DNA of 64,000 nucleotides from Hyphochytrium catenoides. Lineage: Eukaryota > Protista > Hyphochytriomycota. Positions 51,771 to 54,565 of the stretch are shown piece after piece (the first letter of the stretch is position 1; each line of letters opens with the position of its first letter). The notes beneath the pieces are model-generated. The model saw only the letters and a list, made by a program, of their open reading frames with translations. It did no database searches and had not been told where the DNA came from. A program made the position numbers and the translations under genes. The stretch spans positions 39,868-103,867 of the forward strand of contig FLMG01003035.1 in assembly GCA_900088475.1 (NCBI GenBank), given 5' to 3'.

Positions 51771-54565
51771 ATGCAGATGGCACCAGGGCAGAGGCGGATG
51801 TACCATAGTGTACCAGTGGCCAGGGAGATCTTTCAGGTGGAGATTAGATACCAGAACCTTCGTGCCATCGGGGGTAAGTAGCAATAAGGCCTAACTCTGT
51901 TTGTGGTCTCCTGTAGCAGCGCAGCTACCTATCTCATAGTACTATCCCTATCATTTCTGCCACCTTTCATGTGGAATGTTAGCGCCAGTTCTGAATCTAA
52001 GTCACTTCATCTCTGTAGGTGGATCATACGGAACTGTCTGCTCAGCTGATGACACAGTAAGAATCGCGTAGATCTCAGCCTACGAAGCCACTGCTAGTGG
52101 CTACTCGTTCGTCTTTCTAGTTGCTGAGGCCTTCTCTACCCTCTCACCCTCCCTCTCTGCTTCCCTATTTTGTTTGCTGGCTCAATAGCTGAAGAATCAA
52201 AAGGTAGCGATCAAGAAGATCACTGATGCTTTTGCCGACCTGGTGGATGCTAAGCGGATCCTGAGGGAGATCAAGCTCCTCAGGCACTTTGACGGTCATG
52301 AGAACGTTATCAAGGTGAATACTCTGCTTTAGAAGCGTTACATGAGCTCCGGCCCTCCTCTTCTAGCAGTGTACATTTGCTTTCCGCCATTGGCAGTTGA
52401 TGGAAGAGAGGGCACCTGCATCTCCTGCCCTCTGCCCTGGCGAAATGTACTTCGAATTTGGCCACATCCTAGACTTGCATCTTGACTCGAACCTATGGAG
52501 TCCATGGCACTTTTCTTCTCTTTCCGCCTACCACCAGCGTTTTGTTCCAAGTCTCTTCCTTTGGACTACGCTGTTTCTTCTCTGTGTGCTCGGATAATGT
52601 GCATTCCTTTCTAACCTATTGCCCTTCCTAGATCTTGGACATTGCCACAATGCCTCCGAACACACCTGATTTCAGTGATATCTACATCATCACTGACCTC
52701 ATGGAGAGCGATCTCGATCGGATCATCAGCTCCAGACAGCCGCTAACAGACGCACATTTCCAGTACTTCCTCTACCAGATCCTTAGAGGGATGAAATACA
52801 TCCACTCAGCAAATATATCCTCTTCAACGTCTTGCCATGGGGTCCCTGTTCTCTCTTTCGTTCTCTCTGTCGGTGGCTAGTGCTATAACCTCTTCTTACT
52901 TTGCCGTTACTCGAGGTACAGCCTACATACCTTACTCTCTCCGTCATCACTCCTCTCAGCATGCGTGTAGTCCTGATTCGTCTATCTCTAAATACCTGTC
53001 AAGGCTGCTTACATCCCTTCCTTTGTGCCACTCACGTGATCCGGTGTTCAGCTTATCCTTAACTTATTGTCATACGTCCTCCACCGAGATTTGAAGCCTT
53101 CGAACCTTCTCGTCAACGCTAACTGTGACTTGGCTATCTGTGACTTTGGGCTAGCGAGAGGAGTAGATGGTGAATTCCGTGAAGATTTGACGGTAAGGTG
53201 GTAGGAGGGTCTTCTCTTCCCATCGCTACCTTTCCCGCCCTCAAGGCCAACTCTCCCTATAATCGCCGTCGTATGTCCCAATGCCGATAAAGCTGACTCC
53301 TGTTTCTAACATTTGCCTTGTCTAGGAGTATGTGGTCACGCGATGGTACCGCGCACCGGAGCTGCTGGTCGACTGTCAGAATTATGGGCGAAGCATGGAC
53401 GTCTGGGCGATCGGATGTATCTTTGCGGAGATGCTAGGCAGGAAGCCTTTCCTGCAGGTTCGTCTCTGTTGCGCAACATCCATTCTCCTCTCCCTGAACC
53501 TTGTGACTTAAGATCCAGGCTCTAACCGTATCTCGTACTCCTTGGCGCTCTGTCTGTCTTCTTGCTTCAATCCTCCCACATAAAAACTCTCTTCTCAGGG
53601 AAGAGACCCAACCCATCAGCTTCACACCATAATCTCCATACTTGGAACGCCGTCCGAGGGAGATATGGACTTTGTTCAGATTGAAGCAGCAAGGAAGGCC
53701 ATCCTCTCTGCAGGGAGAAGGCCAAGGGTGAGAAGTGAGGCCGCTTGGCCGATCACATATCCTTCGTTATAGAATCTGCTACCTAGCTCCACATTTCTTG
53801 GCCTGGAACCACGTAGTATCCGTTCTGCAGCTATCTTAGAGCCTCTGCACTAGCGTTTCCCACATTGATCAATGTTTGGTGCAATTGCCACTCTTCGCCC
53901 TTCGATCGTTGATGGGATTTATCAAGCGTCCACTTATGCATTTATCGGCGTGCCGTATACTTCTAGCAACCTCTCAGCCAGTACTTCCCGGACGCGAATC
54001 CAATGGCCATCGATCTCTTGGAGAAGATGCTGCAGTTTAATCCTGACAAACGGATCAGTATAGTTGATGCTCTCCGACACCCTTACCTTGGGCAACTCCA
54101 TAATGAAGTAAGTGGCTTCCATTAGCATCGATGGAGTCCTTCTCGCCTTTTTATTCTGCAGTTTCTAGCTCCGCAGCGAGGCAGTGCCACATCCACTTTC
54201 TTGGACGTCTATGATCCACCCACTTCAGCCTGACAAAAGCCCCGTAGGACTGGCTCCTGGGCTTCTCAGTCTCTTTCTATTTTGGGCTGACTGTATCTTG
54301 TCTGGTCTTTTCAGGCTGATGAGCCAGAGTGCCCAAGGAACTTCAACTTTGATTTCGAGAGGGAGGCGTTGAATCAAGGTGTGGACATCCCTAAGGATGA
54401 GCTACAGCGCCTCATGTACAGGTCAGTTTGCATGGAAAGGGATGGGAGACAAAGAGCGAGGGAAGCCTTTTGAAATTGAGATGGACGGCGTTCTGACTCA
54501 TCCCTTATAGAGAGATGCTGCATTATCATCCCGAAGATGACCACGACGCAATGGAGAGGGAGTGA
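51771..54565 (+). CDS. Mitogen-activated protein kinase (TEY type), multi-exon, with one AT-AC intron
   Basis: [38 protein letters not shown]|[21 protein letters not shown]|[27 protein letters not shown] and [26 protein letters not shown]. Confidence 0.95.
52815..53075 (+). other. U12-type (minor spliceosome) AT-AC intron, 261 nt
   Basis: 5' site ATATCCTCTT, branch point TCCTTAAC at 53056-53063, 3' end CATAC. Removal joins HSAN to VLHRDLKP exactly. Confidence 0.93.

Follow-up and report, generated by a model that had tools for sequence, protein, structure and literature searches.

An intron that begins with AT and ends with AC lies immediately before the catalytic loop in a MAP kinase gene of Hyphochytrium catenoides. 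All positions given for this gene refer to the window, which is the whole analysed stretch of 64,000 nucleotides. The intron raises the question whether it belongs to the minor class and, if so, whether the organism possesses the spliceosome that would remove it.

The MAP kinase gene and the borders of intron 4

The coding span of the gene extends from 51771 to 54565 (+), stop included, and comprises 376 codons in ten exons, as deduced from the exon-by-exon translation and the intron phases. Exons 1-5 are located at 51771-51873, 52019-52056, 52189-52314, 52632-52814 and 53076-53192, and exons 6-10 at 53326-53457, 53599-53727, 53967-54107, 54315-54421 and 54511-54565, the last one including the stop (all +). 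The best PDB matches of the exons were MPK4, MPK6, ERK5, FUS3 and ERK1/2. Together with the catalytic-loop motif and the T-E-Y activation lip, these matches place the product among the MAP kinases (CMGC group, ERK-like TEY type).

Exon 4 (61 codons) ends with TAC ATC CAC TCA GCA AAT (YIHSAN, last base 52814). Exon 5 (39 codons), which encodes the catalytic loop, the DFG motif and the T of TEY, starts with GTC CTC CAC CGA GAT (VLHRD, first base 53076). The former aligned to MPK4 (7w5c_A) and MPK6 (6dtl_A) as far as the residue that directly precedes VLHRD; on Arabidopsis MPK6 it reached residue 153 and exon 5 continued from residue 154, resulting in a seamless junction. The junction was also gapless in 5ci6_A (159/160) and in MPS1 (8h59_A, 140/141). 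In addition, 80 environmental relatives, which were fetched by means of the exon 4 peptide, were compared exon by exon, and 61 of them passed through YIHSA(N/S/G)-V(L/I)HRD at the exon 4/5 junction with zero gap. The closest of these relatives (L014-L018, 84-85% identity in exon 4) were colinear at every junction, starting with exon 2 or 3 and ending with exon 9; intron-free environmental relatives of this kind matched every exon of the gene in colinear order. A sequence-only reading of this DNA had restored the kinase frame by joining YIHSAN to VLHRD, and this junction holds against the PDB MAPKs and the 61 relatives alike.

If intron 4 is retained, translation stops after 21 extra codons. 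It might be supposed that intron 4 is never removed and that the gene is a pseudogene, either decaying or left unspliced. This is highly improbable, given that all ten exons are open and in phase, that the kinase motifs from GxGxx through APE are intact, and that environmental relatives share up to 85% of the residues of exon 4 and up to 87% of those of exon 5.

Splice signals of intron 4

Intron 4 (52815-53075, +) has a length of 261 nt, lies in phase 0 and is assigned to the U12-type AT-AC introns by its signals and the translations of the flanking exons. The 5' splice site ATATCCTC (52815-52822, +) is of the kind recognised by U11 and U6atac (consensus ATATCCTT, RTATCCTT) and agrees with this consensus at seven of eight positions, the sole mismatch being a C for T at +8. 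The branch-point box TCCTTAAC (53056-53063, +) represents the perfect consensus, and the predicted branch A (53062) lies 13 nt before the 3' end. In introns of the U12 type, the branch box is expected to precede the 3' splice site by about 10-15 nt, and a long polypyrimidine tract should be absent; in intron 4, 12 nt (TTATTGTCATAC) separate the box from the intron end, which reads CATAC with the terminal AC at 53074-53075 (+). The sequence-only reading had described the intron with these borders, this start, the branch box 12 nt before the end and the CATAC terminus, all of which proved correct to the base. It had also stated that the other introns it traced are of the GT-AG type, and this is true for all eight remaining introns of the MAPK gene, in which neither a U12-like donor nor such a branch box occurs.

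The chance of finding ATATCCTY, TCCTTAAC at one of six allowed positions and a terminal AC together was estimated at ~6e-10 for borders fixed by homology and an intron-like composition. For the total of 67,332 introns annotated in the genome, ~4e-5 introns with all three signals would be expected by chance. When the window was scanned for the U12 pattern with unconstrained borders, one match was obtained, compared to a mean of 1.2 in shuffled sequences, so that the pattern alone is not rare. The significance of intron 4 derives from the coincidence of the U12 signals with the exact frame-restoring borders: donor, branch box and AT...AC are all found there.

Donor-like words (ATATCCTC, ATATCCCT and GTATCCTC) occur elsewhere in the window, with donors at 24574, 37168 and 37324. 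Their flanks do not contain clear coding frames, and these words are probably due to chance. The corresponding segments (24574-25454, + and 37168/37324-37575, +) possess the loose branch boxes CCCTTAAC and TTCCTTTAAC at 13-17 nt from an AC or AG.

The mRNA might also be formed by use of nearby GT/GC-AG sites, for example the GC donor at 52809 and the AG at 53050-53051, which would leave a small indel in the protein and would make the AT-AC pair a coincidence. Within 60 nt of the borders, nine frame-preserving and stop-free combinations of this kind were found. However, each of the nine would cost the protein its catalytic HRD residues or place 6-25 unrelated residues between helix alphaE and the catalytic loop, and none restores the conserved sequence, which is gapless at this place in all matched PDB MAPKs and in the 61 relatives. 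In view of this, and of the low probability given above for U12 signals at exactly these borders, such splicing is hardly to be expected. Judged from its sequence, intron 4 of the H. catenoides MAPK gene is therefore very probably a true minor-class intron (U12-type) and belongs to the AT-AC subtype.

Minor-spliceosome components in the genome

The sequence-only reading had proposed a genome search for the minor snRNAs as a check and had deduced a functional minor spliceosome in this lineage. The searches covered the whole 61 Mb assembly of H. catenoides (4759 records), and the scores were compared to the Rfam gathering thresholds. One gene per minor snRNA was found. The candidates for U12 (C2738:62297-62465, 55.9 bits, threshold 53), U11 (C1601:51116-51259, 47.5 bits, threshold 39) and U6atac (C1895:24516-24643, corresponding to L004 1501-1628, -; 69.5 bits, threshold 33) exceeded the respective thresholds. 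The U4atac candidate (C215:48-177, corresponding to L003 48-177, +) scored 47 bits and thus missed its threshold of 53, but it forms the perfect stem II with U6atac described below. Within the window, the Rfam scan yielded no match at the gathering threshold.

The U11 candidate begins with AUAAAGGGC. In the U12 candidate, the branch-site box GAGUAAGGAAA is complementary to UCCUUAAC of intron 4, with the branch A bulged. The U6atac gene is preceded by a TATA-like box ~30 nt upstream and ends with a T-run terminator. Sub-threshold scores of U4atac are usual outside the opisthokonts (PMC11347168). Over 11 nt, the 5' part of the candidate, CCGUCCUUGUC, is exactly complementary to GACAAGGACGG, the U6atac strand of stem II, and compared to the consensus pair AAGGAUGG/CCAUCCUU this stem contains a compensatory A-to-G / U-to-C change. 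The perfect 11-bp stem II together with the compensatory change identifies the U4atac and U6atac candidates as true partners.

The donor-pairing region of U6atac requires separate consideration. In the Rfam consensus this region contains the box GAAAGGAGAGA, whose AAGGA normally pairs with UCCUU of the donor. The sole U6atac gene found reads GUGUUCGUUGAGCCGAGAGACAGUUAGCA, i.e. the consensus box is replaced by GAGCCGAGAGA. Due to this divergence, pairing with the intron 4 donor (ATATCCTY type) would be imperfect and interrupted. A second U6atac copy with the canonical AAGGA box was not found in the genome, where 17 pattern matches occurred, a number near the control level; two U6atac pattern matches carrying the same 15-mer turned out to be unrelated sequence. 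If it is true that the sole U6atac lacks the canonical AAGGA box, this would imply a changed hand-over of the 5' splice site.

Among the proteins, a homologue of CENATAC/CCDC84 was detected at C4001:4530-7922 (-; L096/L097) in three colinear pieces, with a best E value of 6e-16. The pieces correspond to model positions 1-72, 190-263 and 274-329 and represent at least three exon pieces. In the paper on CENATAC, this protein is reportedly described as specifically promoting AT-AN introns. Two CHHC zinc fingers of the U11-48K type (zf-U11-48K) are also present in the genome, one of which reads CPYDPSH as in U11-48K. CENATAC has been identified as a component of the minor spliceosome (PMC8280824). 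PDCD7 (U11-59K) gave no match in the six-frame genome search, for which its exons may be too divergent. With U11, U12 and U6atac above threshold, the U4atac candidate and CENATAC/CCDC84, the minor spliceosome proposed for this lineage is most likely present, as judged from the genome sequence.

It could further be considered that intron 4 is removed by the major spliceosome as a rare U2-type AT-AC intron. Other eukaryotes do possess AT-AC introns of the U2 type, and the divergent donor-pairing box of U6atac can be taken in favour of this explanation. On the other hand, ATATCCTC at the donor and TCCTTAAC at the branch point are recognition sequences of U11 and U12 and not of U1 and U2, the branch box is followed by only 12 nt up to the intron end, which leaves no room for a polypyrimidine tract, and genes for all four minor snRNAs are present, even if the U4atac candidate scores below the Rfam threshold. 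Removal by the major spliceosome is thus very improbable. The points which speak against the assignment to the U12 type are the C at +8 of the donor, the sub-threshold U4atac, the PDCD7 not detected and the U6atac box GAGCCGAGAGA.

It is likely that intron 4 is spliced and that this is achieved by the minor spliceosome. By analogy with the established minor-splicing pathway, the U11/U12 di-snRNP would bind the donor ATATCCTC via U11 and the branch box TCCTTAAC via U12, with A53062 bulged. The U4atac/U6atac.U5 particle would join next, and U6atac would displace U11. The intron would then be excised exactly between 52814 and 53076, whereby helix alphaE (YIHSAN) would be joined to the catalytic loop. 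Formation of an active kinase would depend on minor splicing, because the unspliced protein stops 21 codons into the intron and lacks the catalytic loop. The gene would hence be one more MAPK-pathway gene dependent on a minor intron. Gene predictors which are restricted to GT-AG introns will mis-model this kinase, with a catalytic loop that is deleted or disrupted.

Two further loci of the genome, L104 1063-2145 (-; C3799) and L106 1465-2088 (-; C2531), were obtained in a rhodopsin search. Their open frames match the solved structures of HcCCR (8gi9) and HcKCR2 (8h87) with 100% identity, over 195 and 194 residues, respectively. Both proteins are channelrhodopsins of H. catenoides (10.1101/2022.09.26.509509), which identifies the genome as belonging to this species. 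On C2531, another rhodopsin match is located ~9 kb away and probably represents HcKCR1.

Intron position in the MAPK family and comparison with known systems

The genome encodes eight MAPK-like paralogues, all of which lack an intron at the HSAN|VLHRD site; L006, L007 and L009-L013 are contiguous there. The paralogous TEY MAPK L008 (C3463) possesses a short GT-AG intron at 1690-1759, which interrupts the D codon of HRD after its first nucleotide. This intron is located near, and not at, the boundary of the animal JNK/p38 type (HR|DLKPSN). Among the environmental sequences, 20 contigs show gaps at other places, which are probably introns and mark these contigs as genomic DNA; at the site of intron 4 they are nevertheless uninterrupted. 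In several environmental contigs, a GT intron is situated 4-7 codons further downstream, behind IIHR, HRDI or HRDLK.

Only one environmental relative has an intron at the exact position and in the same phase (L045, Ga0302309_10084446, 606-681; HSAG|VIHRD, phase 0). In contrast to intron 4, this intron comprises 76 nt, reads GTAACA...ATAG and lacks a U12 donor or branch box, which characterises it as U2-type; in exon 4, the relative shares only 55% identity with the H. catenoides MAPK. The GT-AG intron could be the result of a U12-to-U2 conversion or of a parallel gain. That HSAN|VLHRD is an old MAPK intron position, which hyphochytrids retained as U12-type AT-AC, with conversion to U2-type GT-AG (as in L045) or loss elsewhere, appears rather doubtful. 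If the position were ancient, the control of the MAPK cascade by minor splicing would predate animals and would not be an animal peculiarity.

Animal MAPK genes (JNK/MAPK8-10) represent the same gene family and carry introns of the same class as intron 4. In human, 69% of the MAPK family are minor-intron genes, and genes of the MAPK pathway are enriched in minor introns (PMC6865273). The U12 intron of JNK2 follows exon 6a/6b, and exon 5 starts with DLKPSN, as is evident from the exon 5 primer gatttgaagcctagcaac (PMC1874599). Intron 4 of H. catenoides precedes VLHRD, and the animal JNK U12 intron is located ~80 codons further downstream. With this location after exon 6, and with exon 5 starting at DLKPSN, the JNK intron is not a positional homologue of intron 4. 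The sequence-only reading had left the homology to the minor introns of animal MAPK genes undecided, and this caution was justified.

With respect to the stramenopiles, hyphochytrids have been grouped with the oomycetes in the Pseudofungi, and 67,332 introns with a mean length of 208 bp were annotated in the genome of H. catenoides (PMC5795050). U12 is not mentioned in the genome paper (PMC5795050), and a search of the accessible literature revealed no paper that mentions both U12 and Hyphochytrium. For other stramenopiles, minor introns and minor snRNAs have been published, with few minor introns in Phytophthora, dozens in Saprolegnia and hundreds in Blastocystis, of which 77% are AT-AC; ochrophytes lack both minor introns and minor snRNAs (PMC10639083, PMC2846911).

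The introns of the oomycetes (Phytophthora sojae, P. infestans and Saprolegnia) and of Blastocystis belong to the same class as intron 4, with an RTATCCTT donor and the TCCTTAAC box near the 3' end. The genomes of these stramenopiles encode minor snRNAs, and among them the oomycetes represent the sister group to the hyphochytrids (PMC2846911, PMC10639083, PMC11347168). A minor intron in H. catenoides is therefore to be expected, since minor splicing is already known from its sister group. Unlike in these systems, the host of intron 4 belongs to the Hyphochytriomycota, which would be added to the stramenopile lineages with an apparently complete minor spliceosome. With 261 nt, intron 4 also differs from the minor introns of Blastocystis, which have a mean length of ~42 nt. 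Its occurrence fits the assumption that minor splicing was kept in the branch of oomycetes and hyphochytrids and was lost in the ochrophytes (PMC10639083).
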